The notes below the pieces were generated by a model, which ran no database searches, was not told the origin of the DNA, and saw only the letters and a program-made list of their open reading frames with translations. A DNA stretch of 64,000 bases, from contig JAPMXV010000055.1 in the NCBI GenBank assembly GCA_026936335.1, forward strand, positions 362,194 through 426,193. Direction: 5' to 3'. The stretch is from Mantamonas sphyraenae STR306. Taxonomy: Eukaryota > Protista > CRuMs. Positions 24,722 to 59,892 of the stretch are shown here, one piece after another. The position numbers and the translations under genes are program-made. Position 1 is the first letter of the stretch; each line of letters starts with the position of its first letter.

Positions 24722-25863
24722 TTAGTTCACGCAGGAGTCGCACACACGCACGGTGGTTTCTTGCGGGTAGAGATTGGGCAGGGGAACGGAGGAGGCCGAG
24801 CACGAGGCACAGAAGATCAGGCCGCACTTGCGGCAGTGGTGGCGGCGACGAAAGAGGTTGAAGGAGGAGGAGCAGCTGTTGCACGCGTCTGCGTCTTGGT
24901 CTGGCTGCCACTTGGGGAGTTGGTTCGATTGGAGGGTGGCGATGGTGGCTCGCAGATTGGCGGTTTCGGTGGCGTTCTCATCGAGGGAGGCTTGGAGGGT
25001 GGAGATGGTGGCTTGTAGATTGGCGGATTCAGTGGCGTTCTCATCGAGGGAGGCTTGGAGGGCAGCCTGGGCTGTGGTGGAGTCGCGGAGGGAGGCCTCG
25101 AGGGTGGAGATGGTGGCTTGCAGATTGGCGGTTTCGGTGGCGTTCTGCTGCTGTTGGGTGGCCTGGGCTTGTTTGGCTTCATCGAGGGAGGCTTGGAGGG
25201 CTGTCTGGGCTGTGGTGGAGTCGCGGAGGGAGGCCTCGAGGGTGGTGATGGTGGCTTGCAGATTGGCGGATTCAGTGGCGTTCTGCTGCTGTTGGGTGGC
25301 CTGGGCTTGTTTGGCTTCATCGAGGGAGGCTTGGAGGGCAGCCTGGGCTGTGGTGGAGTCGCGGAGAGAGGCCTCGAGGGTGGTGATGGTGGCTTGCAAT
25401 TCGGTCGAGGTGGCGTTTGCCGCGTCCAGAGCCGCGCGGACCTGGGCCAGCGCTTCCTTGTGTTCGGAGGCCGAGGTTGCAAGCACGGCGTTTTCAGAGG
25501 ACATTGTGTCGATGGTGGTTTGATGCTGCGCGATGGTGGCCTCGAGTTGGGCGGTGGCGCTCTTGGCCTCGGAGAGCTGTGCCTCGAGTTCGCTGCTGCG
25601 GGTGGTCTCCCGTTGCAGGGAGACAATGAGGCGCGCCACCGTGGCACGTGCCTTTGTTTCGCCGTCTTCGGCGACGTTTTCTGCGTTGGAATTGGCAGCC
25701 ACCTGGGTGTTTTCGTTCTGGGGAGGGGAGTTGCATGTGTCAGCCAACGGATCAAAATGAAATTGGCGCGCATTGCAGCAGGCGCGCTACAGGGTGCAGC
25801 AGACCAGACGTGGGTCACGCGTGGGTTGTGAGCGAGTCGGAAGCTTACCACAATTGACTCCAT
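24722..25863 (-). CDS. Coiled-coil + C-terminal FYVE finger protein; probable intron 25718-25848; internal 138-bp repeats
   Basis: WQPD..CNSC..FNLFRRRHHCRKCGLIFCASC..RVCDSC; 46-aa repeats between ~24950 and 25400. Confidence 0.85.
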
Positions 25864-26065
25864 GGGTGATGGATGTGTGTGTATGTGCGTGTGGGGGATG
25901 GATTTTTTGATGGGTGTGGAAGGGCGAGTGGCCTGCAGTGAGTGTGTGTGGTGTGTTCCGGGGGCTGAACGTCGGGTCGAGGTCATTGGTGAAGAGTCGG
26001 TGTGGACGACGACGAAGCGCAACTCAAGCGGGAGAGTGCGAGGCGCGGCGAGCGGAGCAGAGCAA

Positions 26066-26365
26066 ATGCAAGTTTTCCTGCGTTCTTTGACTGGAAGAAC
26101 AATCACATTGGAGGTGGAGAGCACAACGACAGTTGGCAACGTCAAGGAGATGTACGCGGCTGAGGAAGGGGTGCCGGTGGAAAAGCAGCGCTTCGCTTTC
26201 GCTGGCACCGAGTTGGAGGACGACTCAGCGACGATGGAGGAGGTGGGCATTGAGAAAGAGGCAACACTGCACTTTGTGTTGCCATTTGTGGGTGGCGGGG
26301 GTGTGCAAGCTCTGGACGGGAAGGAGCCCGGGTTTGCAGAAGAAGGAGAGGAGGAGGCCGAGTAG
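26066..26365 (+). CDS. Divergent ubiquitin-like protein with diglycine and acidic tail
   Basis: MQVFLRSLTGRTITLEVE...EGVPVEKQRFAFAG..LED...IEKEATLHFVLPFVGG followed by an Glu-rich tail. Confidence 0.85.
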   Translation: MQVFLRSLTGRTITLEVESTTTVGNVKEMYAAEEGVPVEKQRFAFAGTELEDDSATMEEVGIEKEATLHFVLPFVGGGGVQALDGKEPGFAEEGEEEAE

Positions 26366-26493: not shown

Positions 26494-28302
26494 ATGAGCG
26501 AGGCAGAGGACAGGCTGTTTGATTTGAGCGAGGTTGAAGTGCCCAAGAAGCAGCGCCGGTTTGAAGCACTGACAGAGACGGGAAGTGGCTTCCATCGAGG
26601 CAGTGATGGCGTGACGATCACGTCGTATGGTGGACAGGTGTTGGCCGCGGCCGCATACGCTCTTGCTGAAGAGGGGCAGTACGCGCCGAACAGACTGTCG
26701 CTCTGCCTGTTGCATGTGAGTGCACCTGATCTGCTGTCCATTGTGGCGGCGATGGCAGCAACGAATGGGACGTTTGAAAAGTTGTCGCTCATGATTCGCC
26801 GGGTCGTTGACGCAGACGCAGTGGGAGGAGAGGAGTACGTGTGGAGGTCTTTGGCACAGGCAGTACGCGAGAGCACGTCGCTGAAGGAGATAGACATACA
26901 GGTTGGGCAGGAAGGGCAAAAGTGGCTGTGGAAGGCGGTTCGTTCGCAAACGCGGCTGCGGAAGGTCTGTGCGTTGCTTTCGGACGACGTGGACGGGTTT
27001 GTGGGAGCACTGGAGGCTCAGAGCAAACTGGAGAAGCTTGAGCTGCGATGCGACCAGAGTTTGGAGCTGGATGTGGGGCGGCTGGCGTCGGTGATTTCTG
27101 GCATTGGGTGTTCGTGTGTGAGCCTCCACATGGAGGGTGTGTTCCTTGCGGGCACTGCGCTTCTGGAAGGAGCAGGAGATGTGCTGGAGGAGCTGCACCT
27201 GAAGGCGACGGAGGAAGTGAGCTTTGTTCGCAAACTGCACGTTTTTGCGGAAGCGCTTGCGAACACCAGGCTCCGGCGCCTTCATTTGGACACAGGCCAT
27301 GGCGTCGCTGTGCATGAAAACGCCGTCAAGGAGGTTGTGGAAGCCGGAACTCAACTCGAAGAGCTGCATGTGAAGGGATTGGCGACGGCCAAGGTCTCTC
27401 TGGCGTGGCTGGAGGCTGTTGAGGCAGCGCCTGCGCTGCAGGTGTTTGATGTGGACCGGATGAAATCAGTATGGGAAGAAAGCGAGCGGCCGGAGGTGAT
27501 GGAGAGGTTTGTGGAGGTGGTGCAGAGCCACGGACCGTGGGAGTTGCTGCGCGTGCCGACATCGTGCAAGCAAACGGCAGAGTGGCTGAGCACACGGGAT
27601 CGCGAGCATGTACGCAACGTGCAGCTGGTGGAGGAGAATGGCGAGTGGTACGCGTTGTGTGCGGGTCTGGTGGACTGGGAGGTGGGAGGGCAGGTGGAAG
27701 TGAAGGAGCACAATCTGACGTGGGAAGAGAGCGTGATGGTGGCTGAGATGGTGCGTGACGGGCGCGCGAGTGGTTACGTGGAAACATTTCGCACCAAAGG
27801 GCGCACTGTGTACAATGCTGACCTGGACGAGCTGTTTGTTGACCACCGGGCGCCTTTTCTGGTTTTGCAAGCGCTGCGTGAGGCGCAAGGGATGCAGCTG
27901 CACACGCTGAGGTCAAACAGCGACGGCAAAACGATGTCGGCGTGCTTTGTGTGTGAACCTCACGATGTTAGCGTGGGCTTGTTTGCCACGGATGAGCTGT
28001 GGGACGAAGTGATGGCGGCAACCAAGAAGGGCATCCCCCTGGAAGAGCACCGGCGAGTGGTGATGTTCAACAACAAGGAGGAGCTGGACAGCGCGTTGGA
28101 AGACGTGTTGAGCAACGTGGAGTCGCTGTGGGGGCTGAAACTGGTGCAGGTGGATCGGGCTGAGCCGGTGACGGATTTGCCTGCGGCGGTGAAGGGAATC
28201 CACGGTCTGAAGGTGTTGGATCTCCAGGACTGTTTGATTGCGTTTGGTGGGAAGGGAAGGGACATGTGGAGGGGTGTGACCGTGTTTGCTTGCGACGAGT
28301 GA
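26494..28302 (+). CDS. Hypothetical protein with degenerate RNI-like LRRs
   Basis: 602-aa ORF with host-like codon usage and LxxLxL units (SLKEIDI, LEKLEL, LRRLHL, LEELHV, LKVLDL). Confidence 0.65.
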   Translation: MSEAEDRLFDLSEVEVPKKQRRFEALTETGSGFHRGSDGVTITSYGGQVLAAAAYALAEEGQYAPNRLSLCLLHVSAPDLLSIVAAMAATNGTFEKLSLMIRRVVDADAVGGEEYVWRSLAQAVRESTSLKEIDIQVGQEGQKWLWKAVRSQTRLRKVCALLSDDVDGFVGALEAQSKLEKLELRCDQSLELDVGRLASVISGIGCSCVSLHMEGVFLAGTALLEGAGDVLEELHLKATEEVSFVRKLHVFAEALANTRLRRLHLDTGHGVAVHENAVKEVVEAGTQLEELHVKGLATAKVSLAWLEAVEAAPALQVFDVDRMKSVWEESERPEVMERFVEVVQSHGPWELLRVPTSCKQTAEWLSTRDREHVRNVQLVEENGEWYALCAGLVDWEVGGQVEVKEHNLTWEESVMVAEMVRDGRASGYVETFRTKGRTVYNADLDELFVDHRAPFLVLQALREAQGMQLHTLRSNSDGKTMSACFVCEPHDVSVGLFATDELWDEVMAATKKGIPLEEHRRVVMFNNKEELDSALEDVLSNVESLWGLKLVQVDRAEPVTDLPAAVKGIHGLKVLDLQDCLIAFGGKGRDMWRGVTVFACDE

Positions 28303-28312
28303 GCAGGGGTAA

Positions 28313-28481
28313 ATGAAGGATGTGCGGACGCAGTGGAAAGCGTTGCTGGAGAGTGGAGCCAGTGAGGGAGGAATCGTGGATGCGTCGCGAGCACACGGTG
28401 AGGTGTTGGAATTGGCTGGGGAGGGTTGGAGTGAGGACAGGGTGTTTGACGTGCTGGAATTCCGCTGCGTCCCGCTGGTCA
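28313..28481 (+). pseudogene. 5' fragment of an LRR-ankyrin gene split by the transposon (continues at 34851)
   Basis: MKDVRTQWKALLESG..GIVDA resembles the N-terminus of the paralog at 57538 (MDLRKDEWVKLLQSG..RIVDA); joining across the TSD gives an open 492-aa frame. Confidence 0.85.
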
Positions 28482-28638
28482 GGCCTTTGCGACCGACCGT
28501 GAACACTGCTGTGCTTTGTTGAAAAACAATAAAAATCCATCCTTTCGATGGTAGTCGGTCGCAAATCCCTGCCGTCACCCGCCCGTCGCCCCGCCCGCCT
28601 TTATTCTGTGTTGTTTTGTGCGATTGTGCGATTCACTC
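28462..28638 (-). ncRNA. Candidate Fanzor omegaRNA: scaffold in the element 3' end plus flank-derived guide (boundaries approximate)
   Basis: Lies directly downstream of the nuclease stop; perfect 12-bp stem 28486-28497/28554-28565 enclosing small hairpins; stem closes 4 nt from the element end. Confidence 0.65.
28473..28481 (+). repeat. Left target-site duplication CGCTGGTCA
   Basis: Identical to 34842-34850. Confidence 0.8.
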
Positions 28639-31600
28639 TTACTTCTTGCGCAGTTCCGCCCGTTGCTTGCGCCACCTCCTCGATGACAGCTTTGTGTGAG
28701 TCTTCCTGTCCACGCCCGAGATGGCCAGCACCAACAGAGTGGCGATGGTCACCGCAGCGTCCGTATCCTTGTGCTGCGCCCAGCGGTCGCAGCGGGCGCA
28801 GTCCCACCATCTCCGGCTACAACCGCGTCTTGTGTATGACTTGGGACTCAGGGTCACCTGGTGTCCACACTCGCGGCACAGAGCAGAGGTGTACGCCTCG
28901 CGTGTGACCACGACCGTGTGGGTTCGGCTCAGGTGTCTCTTGACGTCCGCCAGAGGGACCCGCGCGCTGAAGCGTCCGTTCCCAAAAGCAAGCAGGGAGC
29001 GCTGCTGGACCAGCCTGTCGATGTCCGAGATGGAGGCCGAGATGCCAGCAAGGTACCTGTTGCGGAGCTTGCGGTGTTCGTAATGATGCGCGTCGACGAC
29101 GTTCCGGTGCGGCTCTCGCTGTGCAAACTCTTCCCGCTTTGCTTGGTTCAGTTCTTGCCATGTCGGGGTAGAAGAAGCAGATGATGATGGTGATGATGAT
29201 GAGGAGGAGGATGATCGTGCGTTGGATCGTAGCGTACGTCGGGAGGACGCCGCTGCTGCTGATGACGCTCTGCATCTTCTGACTGCTTCCGTGGCAGCCT
29301 GGGTCAGGACGTTCTGCTTCTTCCTGAGCTGACTGGTCCGCAGCATGTGTCTGTAGGATGGAGTTGGCAATGCAAAGTAGATACCTGCGTCCACGTGCAG
29401 AACATTGTCGCGATCGAGTGTCGCTGACATCTTGTTGTGGTGAAAGACAGCGACGCAGCTGGTGCAGTCAACGTTGGGGTCCATCCCGATTACAGGTATA
29501 CCAGCAGGCGTCCACAAATCGTTCTGCCCTAGTGTACGGGCCACCTGTTTGTCTGACTCGAGCAAGATTCCAGTGCGCTTGCCAGCAGAAGTTTGCGATG
29601 GCTTGCACTCCGCATCTAGGTGCTGCATGGCGGCTGTGAGGCTGCTCTCGTCGACACCAGACTCTTCAAACCACTGCTCCAGCTTGGGCATGGCCGCTGT
29701 GCCGTACGCTTGATAAAAGAGGCTCGCAATATGCATGACGTGGAACCACGATAGATCCCGCACTTTACCCTTCGCGTCGAACCCAACACGGACACATGCG
29801 ACACGCAGTGCCTCGTCGACGTCTGATGCTGCCACGCAGCCCTGAGCACCATTCAGCTTGCGACGGGCTCCAACCGCCAGGCTATGCGGGGCGTAGACAG
29901 TTTGATAGATAGATCGACCGTCGTTGCCACCGAGGGTGATCCCCTGCCCTCGAGTCTCCTGCCCTGTGTCTGAGTTCCAGAGCCCCGGTAGAACGAGCAT
30001 GGTGACTGCGTTTACAAGGTCACCCCGGTGGGCTGCCCATCCAGCTTCCGTTCTCAACATGCCGACATGTGTTCGCCCTTTGATCCTCTCCAGTGCACGC
30101 TGTGAACCTGGGCACAGAACAGCAGCGTGGTCCACAATAAGCTGGTTGAGCTGGCGAGCGAGCACGTTTGACTTTGCTCGCCCATCCCAGGCCAACGTCT
30201 CGATGATCGCGGTGGCTGCTGCTGCTGCTGCTGCTGCTGCTTCGCCTCCCCTCTTACTCAAGTGCTTCAGAAAGTTGTACGCGACCCGAAACAGCTTAAA
30301 CTTTAGATCGTACCCCGATACCGAAACCGTGCAACGTGCAGTCGCGCGCGTGGGCGAGGTACAAGCTGGACAGCGTGGCCACATTGCTCAGCCTCCAATT
30401 TGAGCAGACAGATGTAGGACGCGACACGAGCCTGGTTCTTCTCGTCCTCCTTTGCCTTTGAGAGCAAAGGCGAGCCAGCCACGACCTTGCTCACCTTGTC
30501 CTTCAGCGGCTGCAGCTGCGTCCTCCAGTCCATCTGCTGCTGCTGCGCAACCACATGCGCCTCTTCATGGTCCTGGTCTTGGTCCTCATCTCGATCGTGC
30601 TCGTGATCCTGGTCTGCTTCCGGTTCTCCATCGTCGTCGACCTCGTCGACCTCCTCGACCTCCTCTGCTTTCACCCTCTTCTTCCATGATGCGAGTGACA
30701 TCCCCGACACGTATGCGCATGCCACCTCCGTCAGCTTCCGCGGGAGCTCCGGCACAGCATCGCACACCATCCTTTTCACCGAGGACGTCCAGTGTTTGGT
30801 CGCAAGGTTCCACATGGTCCTCATCTGACGTGCAGCTGACCCCTCAGCCAGCAGATTCTCGAGTTGCTGACGCTGCTTCTCAAGCTCCAGGCCGTTGTAG
30901 TATGGACTCGCAATATGGGCGCACAACACTGCGTACAAGAGCTCCCGTTCCTGCACGAAGCGACTGTGAGTGTCGACCAGGACTGCGTCCAATTCCTGGC
31001 GTTGGCTTTCAGACATCCTGCTGTCCGCTGCGTCCTGAATAGTCCCACGTGCCACGGTTGTGGATTTTCCCGCCAGTCCCATCACTCGTTCCACGCCTCC
31101 GTGTCCACGGCCGTCATGCACCCCGTACACACCAGACAACGCCTGTTCCTCGGTCGGGCGGCGGTCGTTTAGCAGCGCTGCAACCTTCCGTCCAAGCTTG
31201 TAGAACGATTCACGCTCAGCTGTGCGCGCCTCGTCCATCTCATCCTCATCGTCCTCTTTGCTTGACTCCTGTACGTAGCAGACATCCTTGCCACAGAGCA
31301 GTTTGGCCAAACGGCCCTTCAAGTAGGTGCCCTTGGCCAACATCGAGTCACACAGTGTCTCCACCTCGTCGCTGTTGCTGCATGAATCAAGTCTTCCCGC
31401 CTCGACATCCGCGAGCAGCTCCTCTCGCTTCTGTTCCACTGCCTGCTCGAACTGCTGCATGTTGTCGTACCTTTTTGCCTTCTTCTTTGCCTTTTCAATC
31501 TCCTCCTTCAGCTCAGTCTGCCGTTCAACCGCGTGGTCGAGCGAAGCACGCTCCCGAGCACCCAGCTGAAGCCGTCCTTGAGCTGCAAACGCATCGACGA

Positions 31601-34551
31601 CGTCGGACATCCTACCATCGTCGCTGTCGACACGAATGGTGTATGTCCTGGCGTTCACCACACCGTCACTGAGCACCATTGCCGGGCCCGGGGCAGCTGC
31701 AGGTTCCGTTTGGTTTGGTTTGTGCTCCGGCACCTGCGTGTTCCTCGCCAGCTCCATTAACTTGTCCACGGAAGACGCCAAAGAGTAATCCGCACACAGT
31801 TGGCGCATGACATACTTGAGCTGCATACTGGTCCTTGTTCGCATGGCCGGGCGAACGTATGCCAACGCGAGACGCAGACCGCCCGAATCGCCCAGAGCCG
31901 GGCCCAGCTCGTCGGCGCTGTCGGCGCTGGATGTGGCATATGTGTCCTCACGTGCGCTGGGCATTGCATGTGCCTCTTGCATGTCCTCTGTCTGCATCGC
32001 ATCCGACTCACCACTTCGTTTTCCAAATCTTCTTCTTCCGCCCCGGCTCTTCCGCCGGCCTCCCAGGCCTTTACAAACGCCTCTTCATCCTGGACATCCT
32101 GGACACCATTCTCAAGGTCCTCTGTCTCCATACCCGACTCCACTGCGTCGTCAGCGACCTGGTCCACCTCCCCGGTTTGCACATCTTCGTCATGTGCGCT
32201 GGCGTCGTCCTTCCAGACCCTGTATGCCTTGGCGAACGCATCCTCGTCCATGGTGACGTCGTTTCCCCGTTCGTCATCGATTTGTACCCCCAGCGTCTCG
32301 GCCAGCAAGGTCACCTGTTCCACCATGCCGCTCCTGGCCTCCTTGATTTGATCATCTGAAGCGCGTCCACAAGCAGGCGCTGTCGGTTCAAGCGTGGAAG
32401 CCTGCACGTTGGAATGAATGATTTGGTCCACAGCATTCTGTACACACCACTTCTGTTGTTCTTCGGCAACGCGCTGTACACAGTCGCAGATGCGTTCGCG
32501 ATGGAAGTGGAGAAGGCCAACGGGAGCACGCTGTACAATGGCGCCCGCACAGGTTCCACCCAAAAGCGCATACGTGAAGAAGCGTGCGTTTGTGCTGTCG
32601 TTGCCCACGTGCACAGCTCTCAGATCTGTGTTGCCAGCAAGGTACTCGTTCCAGTTGTCCTGCCGGCACCAGCCGCACCGGACGCCTCTCGCCATGAGTG
32701 CACAAGCGTCTGCACCCACCACGAGTGCATCTGCGGCGTGCTGAATGGCGCACAGGTTTGCATCGTCTGTTGCCCACACGCAGAGGCGCTGGTCCACCCA
32801 AACGTTCCCGTCGTCGCTGATTGAAACGCGGTCGTTGTGCGCACTCCTCAGGGTCTCGTACAGCCCACGCAGCCGGTGCCTTTTGGTGTACGTGTGTACG
32901 TGCGCGTCCAGCTCCTGCCGGAATGATGCAGGGATCGCTTCAATGGCTGCCATCACCAAATCCATCCCCGCCTCCTCGACGCTGCCTTCCTTGGCGCTGC
33001 CATCCTCCACGCCGCCGAGTATGAAGTGGTCGAACCCAGCAACTTCGATGTCGTCGGCAAAGCGCTGGACGAGCGGACGCACGGACCGGACAAGTTTAGC
33101 CAACGTTGCCGTTTGTGCAAACGCCGCTGAGACAAAGCTCCACGTCCTCACCGGACGGCCCTCAGGCGGGTTGGTACACTCCAGTGGGACGTACGTGGTC
33201 ATACCCTCGGGTGACATGCGAGCGAGCGCCTCTACGATGTCATCGCCACTGGAGTTCACGTCCAGCTGCTGATCGAGAGCATCGCCGCCGTTGGTCAGCA
33301 CAACGGCGTTGTAGTCCCCCAATGTTGCTGGTTTCGGTGCAGGAAGAGGCACGCGAGCACCAGCTTGACCGTAAGGCTTGGCACGCTTCGCCGTTGATGC
33401 TTCGGGGGCGACAGAGGCGTTGGCGTGTCCCGGCTTGATGTGAAACGAAGGACAGGAATCGCTTGTTCGGCCTATCATACGAGCGCTGTATGTTCGGCCA
33501 AAGTGCTTCCCCACGTACCTGGCCACCTCTTTGGCAGAGAGCCTCGCCGCAGCAAGTGTGCACTCACACGCGTCGCCCTTGCGGGCTACTTCAATGCACA
33601 GCGCATACTCAGACATTGCGTAGACGCGGCCATTGTGAATGAGAGATGCCTTCAGCAAGTGGCTGATGCTGAGCCAGCACAGGTCATCGTTTCGCCGCGA
33701 GCGTGAGCGTGTTTGCTTGAGAAAAGGCCAGACCTGGGTTGTGAACCGCTTGCGTGCTTCCTTGGCGCGTCTCAGCAACGTGGGGCTGGCTTGGCATTTT
33801 GTGGTACTGATGTGATGCAGAAACTCCGTCTGCTCGGGGTACTGCACCCTCGCCTGCGCCCACCGTTTGGGCTGCTTTTTCTGCGTGCCTTCGCCAGTTT
33901 TGAGCGCCGTGTACATCTGCCGTGCTTGATCTGTTCGAATGTCGTTGAGAAAGTGTGTGCGTACAAAGCGGTGTTTGCTCCGTTGCCTGGTGGGCCTTCT
34001 AGGTTTGACGGTGTGCCACGAGGAGGAAACCCAATCTGACTCCGGCTCGACCTCGATATCGGTATCCATGGGGTCTTTGCCTTTGCTGTCTGCCTCAGTT
34101 TGCTGACGAGAGAGAGAGTGTGTGTGTGTGTGTCGTGAGGGGTCCCACACGTGTGTGAGCCGCAGCAAACGGAATTGAGTGAGGCGGAATTCAAACGTAC
34201 TCGCTCACTGCCACTGCTGCTCGAGGAGGAAGCTGAAGACGTTGAACGAGATGCACGGCCTTGACGGCCTCGGGATGCGCTGCGGGATGCACGGGATGCG
34301 CGACCTCCCCTGGAATGTGTCTCTTGGTTCTGTACACGTTGCCGCTTCTGCTGTCGCCATTCAAACGTTTGCCTGCTCCTTCGTTCACGTCTATTTTCCC
34401 GAGCCTCCACGCTACGCGGTGAATGAGATACCTCATCCCGTGTGTCTTCATCTTCTCGACCCCTCTTGCCGCCCTCATCACACAGCAGCAAGAGAACCAA
34501 CATGAAGAAGAACCAACGGAAGCGCATGTTGTTTTGGCGACCACGGCGCAT
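28639..34551 (-). CDS. Giant Fanzor1-type RNA-guided nuclease (~1,940 aa) with long N-terminal region; intron 34103-34200; 1-nt gaps at ~32010 and ~30315
   Basis: RuvC-I VIGMDPN (D at 29479-29481), LLAFGNGRF, RuvC-II VVVTREAYTS (E at 28897-28899), Zn finger CREC..CARC, RuvC-III HKDTDAAVTI (D at 28765-28767); upstream QLVP and NDGRSI resemble Fanzor1 WED motifs. Confidence 0.85.
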
Positions 34552-34591
34552 AGTCGAGCAGTCACTCGTACATTCTCATTCCAACGTGTAG

Positions 34592-34655
34592 GGTGGCGTT
34601 GACAACATTCATTTCAGTGTCCCAGGTGGCGTTGACAACATTCATTTCAGTGTCC
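34592..34655. repeat. Two identical 31-bp direct repeats (33-bp period) in the element's 5' subterminal region
   Basis: GGTGGCGTTGACAACATTCATTTCAGTGTCC at 34592 and 34625. Confidence 0.95.
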
Positions 34656-34841
34656 TAGGGTCCTCGCGGCTCTTGCGAGGAATCGTTCTGCAAACACATC
34701 GAGCTTGTTCAACATGGTGCACTTACGCATGATCGAACCGTAAGAACCCGCAGAAGAGCGAAATCATGTCTTGGTGAACATTCTATGTGTTTCTGGGAGT
34801 TGTTCTCAAGGGTGGAGCCACGTTCACGCTCAATTGCAAGG

Positions 34842-34850
34842 CGCTGGTCA
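34842..34850 (+). repeat. Right target-site duplication CGCTGGTCA
   Basis: Identical to 28473-28481. Confidence 0.8.
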
Positions 34851-36160
34851 AAGTGCTGGACCTGGAGGGCAACGACTTGGGTCCAGAGGTGTTCGTGGAG
34901 TTGGCCAAAGGTGCGGGAATGGTGCAGGTGCTGCGACTGGCAGACAATTTGGGCGGGGACAAAGGGGCGGCAGCAGTTGCCGCGGCACTTGGATCGTGGC
35001 CGCAATTGCTCGAGCTGGACGTGAGGAACAACAACATCGGCGTGGTGGGGTCACGGGCACTGGGCGAAGCTTTGAAATGCAACGAGACACTGCGTGTCCT
35101 TGAGCTGGGCTGGAATGTGATCGGATGCAGAGGAGCCCTGGAGTTGTCACGAGCTCTGGAGGTGAACACGGGGCTGGAGGAGCTGTCGTTGGACGCAAAC
35201 GAGATTTGTAAAGATGGTGGGGCTGCTGTGGGTGGAATGTTGGCGGTGAACAGGTCGCTGCTGCGGTTGCAGCTCTCGGACAACCAGCTCGGGCGGGCGG
35301 GAGGAGAAGCGGTGGCGAAGGGGCTGTGTGAGAATGACACGTTGCTGGAGTTGTTCTTTGGAACCACTGAACGGGATGAGGGCGCGGCCGAGGCATTCGG
35401 ACATGCGCTTCGGGTCAACGGGCGGTTGCAAGTGCTGGACCTTGCCGGGGTGTGCATGGGCGACGACGGGGCACAGGCCTTGGCTCAGGGCCTTTGCGTG
35501 AACACATCACTGCAGAAATTGATGTTGGGATCTCAGGAGATTGGGCAGCACGCGATGCTGGCGCTAGCGAGCGCTTTGGGAGCTCACAATCGCTCGCTTT
35601 TGGCACTGCACGTGACCAACAGCTCGGATTGGACAGGGACAGAGAGAAACGAAGTGTGGCAGGCATTTGAAGGCAACCGGACGTGCTTGCGTTTTGACTA
35701 CGCTGCTGATTCGAAGATCGCGCGGAATGAGATGAACGCAGGTGCGTTTGTGGACGCCTGCGCAGCTGGAGACTTGCGTGAGGTTCGAGCGCTTCTGGAA
35801 ATGGGGGTGTCTGCCAACGCGTTTTCCGGGGAGCAAACTGGATTGGGAGTGGCCGTGGAGAGTGGACAGGAGAGAATTGTGGCCGAGTTGCGAGCACACG
35901 GCGCAGCGGCAGGGATGAAAACGAGGCAGGTGGTGAGAGGAAAGGGGTGGATGAAGGAGTGGCATTGGATCGGATGGGGTGGGGAGGTGGACGAGGCGAT
36001 GGAGGTGGCGTTGGTGATGAATGGGGAGGAGAGGGAGGCGATGTTTGAAGCAGGTGGGATAGAGGAGTACGTGGAGGGAAGGGGAGGGTGGAAGGGATGG
36101 GTGACACTGCCGGATGAGGTGATGGAGCGGGTGATTGGGTGGATTGGAAGGGGAGGATGA
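34851..36160 (+). pseudogene. 3' part of the interrupted LRR-ankyrin-tail gene
   Basis: 28-aa RNI-like LRRs, ankyrin-like unit, shared C-terminal cassette; lacks its own family-type N-terminus. Confidence 0.8.
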
Positions 36161-36187: not shown

Positions 36188-37403
36188 ATGTACGGAGCAG
36201 CGTTTGTGGAGCTCCTTGCGAGTGGGGCGAGTGTGGAGGATGTGAACGAGGCAATGGAGCAAGCGGGAGAGGTACATTGGCAGTAGGGGCGTGTGCTGGG
36301 GTGCTTGACGTGCGGGGGGAGAAGGAGCTGACACGTCGCAGAGGTTGAATCTTTGGCTGTTCTCCTTTGGGGCGAGTGAAGGCGTCATGCTGGGCAGGGC
36401 GTTGGAGATCAATACGACGCTACGTGAACTGCATCTGAATCAGAACAGGATGGGAGATGAAGGGGCAGTGGCCGTGGCCAGAGCGCTGAAAAGCAATACG
36501 ACTCTTTGTGACCTGTACGCATATCGCAACAGGATCAATGCCAGGGGAGGGCTCGAAATTGGCGCCATGCTGGCGGTTAACAACACTCTGAGACTTCTGG
36601 CCCTGTATGGAAACGCACTGACGGACGAAGGGGCACTTTCCGTGGCCGGAGGGCTCGCGGAAAACACCTCGCTCCGCATCCTGAACCTGAACACGAATCG
36701 GATCGGGGACAAGGGAGCTGTGGCATTGGCGAATGCTATGGCGTATCATCCTGCTCTGCAGAGGCTGTTGCTGAACCACAATCAGATCAGTTCATTCGGA
36801 AGTGAGGCGTTTGGCACGGCTCTGGAGACAAACACATGCTTGCAGATGCTTGATCTGCGGTCGAATGCGATTGGAAAGGACGCAATGTTGCTGTTGGCCA
36901 AGAGGATGGAAGCAAACCGGACGTGCTGGGAGTTGCTCGTTGATGACGTGGAGATTGAGGCTGCCGCACGCAACCGCAGCATGGCAGAGCGGTTCGTGGA
37001 AGCAGCCGCGACCGGAGGTGTGGATACGATGGTGGAGCTGAAGGAGTGGGGTGTGAGCGTTGACGCTTCTCCTGGTGGCAAGACAGCGTTGAGGTTGGCA
37101 GTCATGCACAGGGAGGACAGGGTTGTGGAGATGTTGAGGGGATTCCAAGTGTGTGTGGGGAGGGATATGGTGGAGGTGGTGAGGGAAGCAGGGTGGAGAA
37201 GGGCGTGGCATTGGATCGGATGGGGTGGGGAGGTGGACGAGGCGATGGAGGTGGCGTTGGTGATGAATGGGGAGGAGAGGGAGGTGATGTTTGAGTGTGG
37301 AGGGATGGAGGAGTATGTGGAGGGAAGGGGAGGGTGGGAGGGATGGGTGACACTGCCAGATGAGGTGATGGAGCGGGTGACGCAATGGATCGGCCATCTT
37401 TGA
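36188..37403 (+). CDS. RNI-like LRR-ankyrin protein with shared C-terminal cassette; intron 36272-36341
   Basis: Exon MYGAAFVELLASG...AGE joined by a GTACAT..CTGAC..CAG intron to RLNLWL; NTTLRELHLNQNRMGDEGA-type repeats. Confidence 0.85.
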
Positions 37404-42537: not shown

Positions 42538-44158
42538 ATGTCCAGGGTGCGAGCGATGATGATCAAGGTGAGCACAGTTGACGTTGAATGATGCCCGCAG
42601 CTTCGCCTTGCACCGTCCAGAACGCTGGGTGACGCGTCAACACTAACAATTGGAGGCGGACAGGAACGACTCCGACAACAGCACGCAGATGCCATAGTGG
42701 CAGTTCTCCTGGATGGTTCCGACGATGAGGTCGTTGATGCGCTGGGGAAGGTGCAGGAGGTGAGGAAGAACCTTGAGCGCGTTTGTGTGTGTTTGCCTCC
42801 GGCTTACGCGACAAGTGAGCATGCAGGAAGTCTATGTTCGGGGGCGTCGAATTGGCGTCGAAGCCATAATTCGACTGGCCAAAGGACTGGAAGTGAGGAC
42901 GGGTGTGCGCCGTGTTTTTCTGGGGGACAACATCATTGAAAGTAAGGGCGCCACTGCCATTGCCAGAGCCGTGCAGCTGAACAACCAATTGCAAGTTGTA
43001 CACCTCCACGGCAATCGGATTGGTCCCACAGGCATAGAAGCTCTTGCACGAGCGTTGGAGGAGAACAACAACCTGCACAGCCTCTTTCTGGGGGGAAACG
43101 CGGTCCAGCTGGAAGGGGCAATCGCTGTTGGTCATGCCTTGCGAGTGAACACCAGCCTGCAGGTTCTTGAGCTCGACACGAGTTTGATTCATGCACAAGG
43201 AGCAGTCGCCATCGCTGAGGGACTTGCGTGCAACAACAGCTTGCAGTGGATCTCCCTCGCGCACAACCGCTTCGGACCAACAGGAGCTGCAGCCATCGCC
43301 CAGGCGCTCCAGGTGAACAACAGCATACAGTACGTCAATTTGATGGGATGCGACATGGGAGACGAAGGAGCACAGTCCATCGCGCACGCGTTGGTGGGGA
43401 ACCAAGTTCTGCACACCGTCGTCCTTGCGGACAACAACATCAAGGAACAGGGAGCCCTCATTCTTGGGCAAGCGCTTCACGAGAATCGCAAGTGCTTGCG
43501 CATAGAAGTTGCAAGAGACGCTGATCTGGAGGCCTACGTGTCTCGGAACATGGAGGCAGCAAAGGAGTTTGCGGAAGCTGCGAGGCATGGCCATGTTTGC
43601 ACCATGCAACAACTGGTAGATTGGGGTGTCCACGTCGATGCGTACCCGAATTGGGATTCAACGGCACTGGGTGCAGCTGTAGAGGCAAGGAGGGCCGACG
43701 TGTGCGTTTGGCTCCTGCAGCATGGCGCAAATCCCCGGACGCGATTGGCCAATGGACCGTCTGCCCTGGAACGAGCAAGAGAGGACTGGCCAGGGATTGC
43801 AGAGGTGCTGAATGGCGGAGGCACATGGAGTGAGAAGGTGCACTGGGCGTGGGGACGGGGTGTGGACGAGGCGATGGAGGTGGCGTTGGTGATGAATGCG
43901 GAGGAGAGGGAGGCGATGTTTGCGCGTGGTGGGATGGAAGGGTACGTGGAGGAGACGGGGTGGCAAAGGTGGGTGACGATGCCCGATGAGGTTATGGAGC
44001 GAGTGGTGGGGTGGTTGGGCAGGATGTGCTGGTGGCAGGAGCAGCAGGGTGGGGGCGAGAGTGATGAGAAGGAGAGTGATGAAGAGAGGGAAAGGGAGAG
44101 GGAGAGGGAGAGGGAGAGGGAGAGGGAGAGGGAGAATTGCAAGTGCCTTGTGCAGTGA
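42538..44158 (+). CDS. RNI-like LRR-ankyrin protein with shared C-terminal cassette; probable introns 42568-42663 and 42760-42826
   Basis: Both introns are phase 0 with GTGAG donors; LRRs; TALGAA..LLQHGANP; (GAGAGG)n encodes an ER run near the C-terminus. Confidence 0.82.
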
Positions 44159-57247: not shown

Positions 57248-57537
57248 TGGTGACGGAGCCGATTACAGTAAAGTGTACAGTAAAAAGTCTTGTGTTTCCG
57301 GGTTCGTGTTGGGGTTGCAGGATGAGGGTGTGTGTGTTTCGTGGCGGCGAGGAGCTGGCAAGGCGCCCCTCGTCCTGCGTGCGGTGGTGCATCCAACGCA
57401 TCTGCATACACATAGTACAGCACGGTCATAGGGTAGGGAAAGGCAGGGGGCATCGGGGCCTTGCTTGCGTGGGTGTGGCAGGTAGGGAAGAGGATTGCTG
57501 ACGCTCATGGGTTATGTAATACTGTATATTAGGCAAA

Positions 57538-59892
57538 ATGGACTTGAGAAAAGATGAATGGGTGAAATTGTTGCAAAGCGGGGACCATGGGCGGATTGTG
57601 GATGCTTTGGAGGCCCAGGGAAGGGTAAGTTGGCGTGGGGAGGGGCCGAGAGGGAAGGAGTTTGGCGAGCGTGACGTGTTGATCGTCGCAAAAGGGAAAG
57701 GGAGAGGACGTGTGTTGACACGACCCACTCAGAAATTGGACATTGCAAGTGGGGATCTGGGAGGCAAAGAAGCAATCGCACTGGCCAAAGCGCTGGCTGA
57801 GAACCGCCGCTTGCAAGCGCTGGAACTCAGCTGGAACAACTTTGGGGCAGAAGGAACATCAGCGCTGGCCAAGGGACTGAGTGGGAACACCAGCTTGCGG
57901 ACAATAGACCTCCGCGGCAACGACATCGGGGTAGACGGAGCTGCATCGCTGGCGCAGGCGCTGTGTGAGAACAGCAGCTTGCAGACACTGGACCTCGGGA
58001 ACACCAGCATTGAGGCAGAAGGAGCATCAGCTCTGGCCAAGGGATTAAGAGAGAACAACACCTTGCAGACTCTGGACCTCACTGACGACGCCATCGGGGC
58101 AGAAGGAGCAACAGCGCTGGCCAACGGACTGAGTGGGAACACCAGCTTGCAGACACTGAACCTCAGCTGGAACAGCATTGAGGCAGAAGGAGCAGCAGCA
58201 CTGGCGCAGGCACTGAGTGGGAACAATGGCTTGCAGAATCTGAACCTCACCGACAACGGCATCGGAGCAAAAGGAGCAACAGCGTTGGCGCAGGCGGTGG
58301 GACAGAACAGCAGCTTGCAGACTCTGAACCTCCAGGAAAATCGCATTGGGGCAGAAGGAGCAGCAGCACTGGCACAGGCACTGAGTGGGAACATCGGTTT
58401 GCAGAATCTGAACCTCGAGAACAACAGGATCGGAGCAAAAGGGGCAGCAACACTGGCGCAGGCGCTGAGAGAGAACAGAAGCTTGCAGACACTGAACCTC
58501 AGCTGGAATAGCATCGAAGCAGAGGGAGCAGCAGCACTTGCGCAGTCACTTTGTGAGAACGGCAGCCTGCAGGTGCTCGACTTACCCAGCAACAAAATCG
58601 ACGCAGTGGGAGCAACAGCACTGGCGCAGGCACTGAATGGGAACAAGAGCCTGCAGACACTGAACCTCAGCTGGAACAGCATCTGGGACGAAGGGGCAGC
58701 GGCATTGGCTCAGGCTCTCAGTGGGAACAAGAGCCTGCAGGCTCTGGACCTACGCAGCAACAGAATCGGTGCAGAGGGAGCAGCAGCACTGGCGCAGGCA
58801 CTTTGTGAGAACAGCAGCTTGCAGACACTGAACCTCCGTTGGAATGGCATCGGGGCAGAAGGAGCAGCAGCACTGGCGAAAAGTCTGGGAGAGAACAGCA
58901 GCTTACAGACGCTGAACATCAGCAGGAACAGCATCGGGGCAGAGGGCGCAGTAACGCTGGCGCAGGCACTGAGTGGGAACAGCAGCTTGCAAAGGCTTGA
59001 CCTCAGAGAGAACAGCATCGATTCAGAGGGAGCGGCAGCATTGGCGCAGGCTCTGAGTGGGAACAGCAACTTACGGAGACTAGAGCTCAACGGCAACGAC
59101 ATCGGGGACAAAGGAGCGGCAGTGATGGCGCAGGCACTGAGTGTGAACAGCAGGTTGCAGACGTTGTACCTCAGCAGCAACGACATCGGGGACAAAGGAG
59201 CGGCAGTGATGGCGCAGGCACTGAGTGTGAACAGCAGGTTGCAGACGTTGTACCTTGGTAGCAACAGCATCGGGGCAGAGGGAGCAGCAGCACTGGCGCA
59301 GGGACTGAAGAAGAACAGCAGCCTGCAGTCGCTGTACCTCCACAGCAACAGCATCGGGGACTACGGAGCAGCAGCACTGGCGCAGGTGCCGGAAACCAAT
59401 CGGTCGTGCTGGCAAATCGAGGGAGTTTTCAATGACGCGTTGCAGTTGCTGGTGGAGAGGAACCAGAAGCATCATGAGGAGTTTGTGGAGTGTGGGGATG
59501 TGGAGAAGATGAGAGAGTTGATGGAGTGGGGTGTGCCTGTGGATACGTTTGCAGGGGATGAAGGGGAGGAGACTGCGCTGGAGAGGGCGTTGAGGCAAGG
59601 GGATGTGAGGATTGTGGAGGTGTTGAGGGGGTGGGGTGCAAAGCCGAGGATGCAAACGGAGGAGATGGTGAGGAAGGAAGGGTGGAGGAAGGCGTGGCAT
59701 TGGATTGGATGGGGCTGGGAGGTGGATGAGGCGATGGAGGTGGTGTTGGTGATGAATGGGGAGGAGAGGGAGGCGATGTTTGCGTGTGGAGGGATGGAGG
59801 AGTATGTGGAGGCAGGAGGTTGGAGAGGGTGGGTGACACTGCCGGATGAGGTGATGGAGAGGGTGTTGGGGTGGGTGGGGAGGGGTGGGTGA
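57538..59892 (+). CDS. RNI-like LRR protein (~20 repeats of 84 bp) with ankyrin-like unit and shared C-terminal cassette; probable in-frame intron 57625-57732
   Basis: N.SLQTLNL..N.IGAEGAAALAQAL repeats; GTAAGT..TTGAC..CAG intron at the same position as in the paralogs. Confidence 0.9.
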   Translation: MDLRKDEWVKLLQSGDHGRIVDALEAQGRVSWRGEGPRGKEFGERDVLIVAKGKGRGRVLTRPTQKLDIASGDLGGKEAIALAKALAENRRLQALELSWNNFGAEGTSALAKGLSGNTSLRTIDLRGNDIGVDGAASLAQALCENSSLQTLDLGNTSIEAEGASALAKGLRENNTLQTLDLTDDAIGAEGATALANGLSGNTSLQTLNLSWNSIEAEGAAALAQALSGNNGLQNLNLTDNGIGAKGATALAQAVGQNSSLQTLNLQENRIGAEGAAALAQALSGNIGLQNLNLENNRIGAKGAATLAQALRENRSLQTLNLSWNSIEAEGAAALAQSLCENGSLQVLDLPSNKIDAVGATALAQALNGNKSLQTLNLSWNSIWDEGAAALAQALSGNKSLQALDLRSNRIGAEGAAALAQALCENSSLQTLNLRWNGIGAEGAAALAKSLGENSSLQTLNISRNSIGAEGAVTLAQALSGNSSLQRLDLRENSIDSEGAAALAQALSGNSNLRRLELNGNDIGDKGAAVMAQALSVNSRLQTLYLSSNDIGDKGAAVMAQALSVNSRLQTLYLGSNSIGAEGAAALAQGLKKNSSLQSLYLHSNSIGDYGAAALAQVPETNRSCWQIEGVFNDALQLLVERNQKHHEEFVECGDVEKMRELMEWGVPVDTFAGDEGEETALERALRQGDVRIVEVLRGWGAKPRMQTEEMVRKEGWRKAWHWIGWGWEVDEAMEVVLVMNGEEREAMFACGGMEEYVEAGGWRGWVTLPDEVMERVLGWVGRGG

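Follow-up and report, generated by a model that had tools for sequence, protein, structure and literature searches.

Target-derived scars at the 5' ends of a Tc1-like, Fanzor-bearing element of Mantamonas sphyraenae suggest homing by a giant nuclease

Introduction

In the 64,000 bp of the Mantamonas sphyraenae genome analysed here (the window), an LRR gene is interrupted by a mobile element that codes for a Fanzor-type nuclease. A preliminary description placed the element at 28482–34841 and took it for a complete Mutator-like (MuDR) transposon, flanked by a target site duplication (TSD) of 9 bp. The locus raises the question of how such an element moves, and of why its copies in the genome are constant at one end and variable at the other.

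Results

The interrupted LRR gene

The 9-mer CGCTGGTCA is present at both flanks (28473–28481 and 34842–34850), and deletion of 28482–34850 restores an open LRR frame of 492 aa from the ATG at 28313, both as first described. The two gene pieces were searched separately.

28313–28479, plus strand: LRR-ankyrin-like gene, 5' fragment (pairwise E 2e-4 against the N-terminal part of the 57520 paralog)
34849–36160, plus strand: interrupted LRR gene, 3' fragment (LRR_6, E 5.9e-14; 44% identical to the paralog at 58567–59889)

The 56 aa ahead of the junction are similar to the N-terminal part of the LRR paralog at 57520, so that the insertion has split one gene. The first LRR repeat, previously given as 27 aa, measures 25 aa from motif to motif (residues 56 to 81) and is uninformative on the join, as it lies wholly downstream of the junction. 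Three DNA runs gave no sign of the empty allele: the contig from the left flank continues without a branch into the element up to 28509, a type of evidence that cannot prove absence of the allele. LRR-ankyrin-like paralogs cluster locally (window 36190–37403, 42764–44155 and 57520–59889; 35–45% identical to the interrupted gene) and may buffer its loss. A small ORF with a ubiquitin-like core is found at 25862–26365.

Ends, target site and copies

Genome comparison (25,061,354 bp in 78 contigs, FALCON assembly; PMC10492846) bore out the expectation that the element is multicopy with common termini: there are six full copies at 96.4–98.1% identity and three diverged ones. The expected TSDs of 8–9 bp did not accompany them. 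With 28482–34841 as boundaries, other copies show 6, 7, 9, 11 or no matching bases (4 to 11 bp overall), so that there is no constant TSD of 8–11 bp; the constant feature is a duplication of 2 bp, found in 13/13 in-register copies (16 paired copies were tabulated), while copy C8 is without a TSD. The apparent 9 bp duplication of the window copy is a scar, and the element is delimited as follows.

28480–34846, minus strand: whole element, 6,367 bp, ends 5'-CAG ... CTG-3' (16-copy junction table)
28478–28479: 2 bp target duplication (GT) on the side of the element's 3' end, with the target TG at 28476–28477
34847–34848: 2 bp target duplication (GT) on the side of the element's 5' end, with the target CA at 34849–34850

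The consensus end is defined by the unscarred copies C43, C59, C41 and C51. A GTGAAC box stands 19 nt from each revised end (28480 and 34846); these boxes are symmetric, and the CAG-starting ends are imperfect. Among the 13 duplicated dinucleotides are CG (4), CT (3), CA (2) and one each of AC, GG, TT and GT, but not a single TA. The target is TG-NN-CA, with the upstream T and G in 12/13 and the downstream C in 15/16 copies, as counted in a sample of 13–16 junctions from which the consensus end had also been picked. Since the window family begins with CA and ends with TG, the target palindrome alone mimics a 6 bp duplication. An interpretation of the ragged duplications as "coupling sequences" of a tyrosine recombinase was dropped in view of the clean 2 bp TSD of the unscarred copies and their DDE partner.

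Informative sites among the copies form mosaics (43% pairwise compatible, 71% among neighbours, p=2e-4), a pattern that fits template switching and that could in part be a polishing artefact. A fairly recent insertion, as originally proposed, is plausible, but because the copies are mosaics their 3% divergence cannot date it. A 33 bp tandem duplication upstream of the ORF (window 34576–34641) is private to the window copy.

A partner transposase

The window element encodes no transposase, and the nine full-length copies as a whole carry no separate one. The link to one is provided by the 5' end.

34742–34839, minus strand: 5' terminal ~98 bp, 87–90% shared with IS630/Tc1 transposase-bearing elements

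The elements sharing this terminus encode a transposase of 345 aa (PF13358, E 2e-24) of the DD34E type, which is weakly like Sleeping Beauty and ~30% identical to IS630-type proteins, and four copies of which are 99–100% identical to one another. In four copies of this family the junctions are clean and read TG-NN [CAGTTGG ... CAG] NN-CA, the target being degenerate in one. Downstream they carry a different Fanzor-like ORF of 1,685 aa, with an N-terminus that has no evident similarity to the window family, and the 3' ends of the two families differ. The two families are linked by descent, as the C45 Fanzor copy has kept the start of the transposase gene ahead of its Fanzor. The window element is moved in trans, most likely by a DD34E transposase that its sisters supply.

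The window family thus has the short TIRs and the 2 bp duplication of IS630/Tc1/mariner elements, while a DD(34)E transposase is present only in trans, in sisters that share its 5' end. Because 0/13 duplications are TA, we file the element as one that works like Tc1/mariner, a derivative by mode and not a canonical member; a Tc1-type transposase without TA specificity is unusual.

The 1,685 aa protein (L034:884–5938, on G000:C11) has an N-terminal GHY...W..FDD motif, which we take to resemble the His box of ubiquitin-specific proteases. MITE-like sequences of ~150 bp (L051, L052 and L053, on C45, C3 and C35) have a CAGG terminus corresponding to the 3' end of the window element and are devoid of the omegaRNA interior.

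A giant Fanzor protein

32009–34069, minus strand: first of three pieces of the giant Fanzor gene (start Met at 34069; orphan N-terminus; ORF continuous in sisters)
30343–32008, minus strand: middle piece, between two private 2 bp insertions
28639–30342, minus strand: C-terminal piece (RuvC D at 29481, alternative E at 28899, C4 zinc finger, D at 28767)

In five sister copies and three diverged copies these pieces form a single open frame of 1,780–1,861 codons, corresponding to about 1,810 aa from the Met, with an orphan N-terminus of ~1,200 aa followed by the Fanzor RuvC. The preliminary description correctly recognised the TnpB/Fanzor RuvC, which together with a zinc finger lies in the C-terminal ORF, and overlooked the giant size of the protein. 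As most Fanzor1 proteins have 600–700 aa (PMC11423790), one of three times the normal size with an orphan extension is unusual. In the window copy, two private 2 bp insertions near 30342 and 32008, which could be polishing errors, cause frameshifts; whole-protein work was based on an intact sister copy and the window copy was left unjoined. With its frame split and a transposase absent, the window copy is frameshifted and non-autonomous rather than complete.

The Fanzor motif D-x(125-275)-TS-xx-C4 finger-x(5-50)-RD is recognisable, with 196 aa from D to TS and with the final D 8 aa past the last Cys, preceded by K in place of R. The rearranged RuvC-II glutamate (a criterion of PMC13565253) stands six residues ahead of the zinc finger (E496 and C503 of the C-terminal ORF). 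This ORF matches PF07282 with E 8e-5, which is under the gathering score, and its Atlas neighbours are TnpB/Fanzor clusters (score 0.97); a word search with the C-terminal 620 aa returned no alignable homologs. Judged by these features the protein qualifies as a Fanzor, and it may cleave DNA under RNA guidance in a TAM-dependent way. Among intact copies, pN/pS is 0.20 in the nuclease part and 0.37–0.46 in the upstream part.

The N-terminus is conserved across four subfamilies. Its first 630 aa had no match by word search, in Pfam, among PDB sequences or among 1.84 billion representatives, and their neighbours by Atlas features score under 0.9; the middle region had no Pfam match. The AlphaFold models are poor (pLDDT 42 for the N-terminal and 47 for the middle region), and fold searches with the N-terminal model gave nothing informative. 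Profile, sequence and fold searches revealed no DDE, HUH, recombinase or RT signal in the N-terminus. A likeness to FEN1/XPG near aa 435–505, noticed by eye, found no support (hhalign probability <1%, no better than reversed controls), and PF00867 (XPG) matches only other loci of the genome.

On another contig (G000:C51:275263–275829), a match to the N-terminal (HTH) part of a transposase (29%) lies inside an open frame of 2,074 aa, which might be another giant Fanzor with a fused piece of transposase.

Candidate omegaRNA and predicted guide

28480–28620, minus strand: candidate omegaRNA scaffold (terminal stem of 28554–28571 paired with 28480–28497, closing three hairpins)
28458–28477, minus strand: predicted guide, from the LRR gene flank

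The last ~100 nt of the element have a predicted structure of unusual stability (z=-5.2), which includes one compensatory pair, and ~140 bp of the 3' end are conserved in relatives. The guide is placed according to the Fanzor architecture set out in the SpuFz1 report (PMC10432273) and in PMC13565253, so that the omegaRNA would be read through from the 3' end into the flank, and the predicted TAM at the empty site is TG-NN. In run X4 (window 27800–33700) the element is covered and the upstream gene is not, with a loose end that corresponds to the 3' flank of the C45 copy; the pattern looks like RNA read-through into a guide, in a run that, like all the others, is not recorded as RNA.

Scarred and truncated copies

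34840–34846, minus strand: scarred 5' terminus, CAGCGCC vs the consensus CAGTTGG

Within each subfamily the terminal seven bases are constant at the 3' end in 16/16 copies, and those at the 5' end are variable. In a permutation test with shuffling over 13 copies, the non-consensus 5' bases were identical to the copy's own downstream target in 15/20 cases vs 5.2 expected (p=1.3e-4); the other 5/20, including 34840–34841 of the window copy, match neither element nor target. In the window scar, it is positions 4–5 (34843–34842) that match the target and positions 6–7 (34841–34840) that agree with neither source. Total length is conserved, 13/16 copies being in register and two shifted by one base. 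The C31 scar is in register even though only one of its seven bases agrees with the consensus, an indication that flank homology guided the alignment.

Copies that are reduced to the 3' end or internally deleted have a longer target tail at the junction, spanning 6–16 bases. The tail comprises 8/8 nt in C75 (142 bp of the element kept), 16/18 nt in C30b (42 bp kept), 9 nt, joined via microhomology, in C8b, and 8 nt in C74; C62a has no clear tail.

There are also 5' ends for which no partner 3' end was found (L045, L046, L047, L054 and L018, on C18, C5, C25 and C53), possibly the products of aborted repair from the other side of a break.

Discussion

Of several possible explanations for the scars, we favour one, with a probability of about 0.65, in which a Tc1-type element is combined with a giant Fanzor that would cut the empty allele, repair from the occupied allele leaving the 5' scars. 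The DD34E transposase of the sisters would move the element in trans, with insertion in TG-NN-CA and a 2 bp duplication. The guide of the omegaRNA in the 3' end would extend into the 3' flank and direct the Fanzor to the empty homologous allele (the organism is diploid; PMC10492846), to be cut about 14–21 bp downstream of the insertion point. For repair of this break the occupied allele would serve as template, and the TAM-side end would bear a non-homologous target tail. Incomplete trimming of this tail would result in the first 3–8 element bases being overwritten in register, and aborted synthesis in copies with only the 3' end, joined to a longer tail. The window copy would then be a scarred insertion, apparently fixed, with its own nuclease gene broken.

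We infer cutting and homing by this eukaryotic Fanzor from genomic sequence. An unduplicated target tail at the 5' junction would mean that the empty allele was broken at a position downstream of the insertion point, and it is probably the naive allele that was cut, since the tails match pristine target. The longest tail, 16 nt past the TSD, agrees with the position at which SpuFz1 cuts the non-target strand, after base 16–17 (PMC10432273).

The scars could instead arise in the step carried out by the transposase, if integration is slipped or one-ended: the 3' end would be joined first and host repair would extend the target before the 5' end is joined, so that the Fanzor would be uninvolved. 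Bao and Jurka gave one-ended transposition as the explanation for the 5'-truncated, Fanzor-carrying CRe-1/2/3 elements with their 7–19 bp duplications (PMC3627910), and here the target CA offers microhomology to the terminal CA of the element. Under end joining, however, one would expect neither the conserved total length nor a scar such as that of C31, which is in register with hardly any microhomology, and the tails end at about the distance of a Fanzor cut. We therefore consider this explanation unlikely.

Still less probable is that the orphan ~1,200 aa are themselves the mobilising enzyme and that the family has spread without an IS630/Tc1 transposase. Nine full-length copies without a separate transposase, and an N-terminus kept across four subfamilies under purifying selection, would accord with this, but the N-terminus gives no signal of any such enzyme, and the same ends and 2 bp TSD occur in the transposase-bearing family, with its dissimilar Fanzor N-terminus.

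A MuDR/Mutator element with a 9 bp TSD can be dismissed as extremely improbable: the 9-mer does flank the window copy and the C45 copy, and Fanzor-only MuDR elements are known in fungi (PMC3627910), but apparent duplications of 4 to 11 bp or none reduce to 2 bp, the partner by shared 5' end is of IS630/Tc1 type, neither the element (no Pfam match in the ORF) nor the genome (PF10551) yielded a MULE domain, and the unscarred copies already refute this assignment. The preliminary description was wrong on superfamily but right in that an LRR gene is interrupted by a TIR element that carries a Fanzor, for which a candidate guide RNA can be placed at the 3' end and the empty site can be defined.

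Beyond the favoured scheme of cutting and repair from the occupied allele, the giant Fanzor might be a homing machine in a single polypeptide, the orphan extension of ~1,200 aa processing the break or steering repair to the occupied allele. This is a speculation that we regard as doubtful; if true, the elements would act in this diploid eukaryote as natural allelic drives guided by RNA, and the 5' end of every copy would be a record of past homing events.

The family is reminiscent of the Mariner-Fanzor1 elements PGv-1 and PUl-1 and the Fanzor-only PUl-4, which have TA duplications (Bao and Jurka 2013, PMC3627910). In common are a Tc1/mariner-type TIR element with a 2 bp duplication, the coexistence of transposase-plus-Fanzor and Fanzor-only forms with common termini, and a chimeric exchange of 3' modules; here, by contrast, the dinucleotide is free within TG-NN-CA, the Fanzor has ~1,810 aa and the 5' ends are scarred. 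With Spu-1 (SpuFz1) and its ghost loci (Saito 2023, PMC10432273), the family shares inverted repeats that enclose one Fanzor ORF, a 3' end containing an omegaRNA (here a candidate), a fixed dinucleotide ahead of the 5' end and omegaRNA-only relatives. It differs in the size of its Fanzor, against the 600–700 aa of most Fz1 proteins (PMC11423790), and in that no transposase was found for Spu-1; nor are target-derived scars mentioned in the passages of Saito 2023 considered here.

The Chlamydomonas elements CRe-1/2/3 likewise include 3'-intact, 5'-truncated copies, with duplications of 7–19 bp that start at the normal target motif; they differ in being Helitron2 elements, and in-register overwriting of TIRs is not described there (PMC3627910). 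Their explanation by one-ended transposition predates the recognition of Fanzor as a nuclease, and the same signature as found here would reinterpret their variable duplications. The proposed process also resembles the restorative homing of IS605/IS607 by TnpB/IscB, in which the empty site is cut under RNA guidance and recombinational copying follows (PMC13565253), but that has been shown in bacteria after scarless excision, and here it would concern a eukaryote and a DDE element. According to a 2026 review, homing has been demonstrated experimentally only for the TnpB and IscB of bacteria (PMC13565253), and in the literature searched we found no eukaryotic demonstration of homing by an OMEGA nuclease.

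This family makes eukaryotic Fanzor homing directly testable. Its copies provide a countable genomic signature of homing, the polarity and tail length of which match Fanzor biochemistry, and the components for a test are defined: intact nuclease genes, a candidate omegaRNA, a predicted TG-NN TAM, an empty site and a partner transposase.

A second family of IS630/Tc1-plus-Fanzor elements, with other termini, is present in the genome (L055–L068, on C14, C17, C40, C41, C44, C58 and C68). Its copies on C17 and C41 have a common 5' flank and different 3' flanks, which represents either a chimera or a segmental copy.
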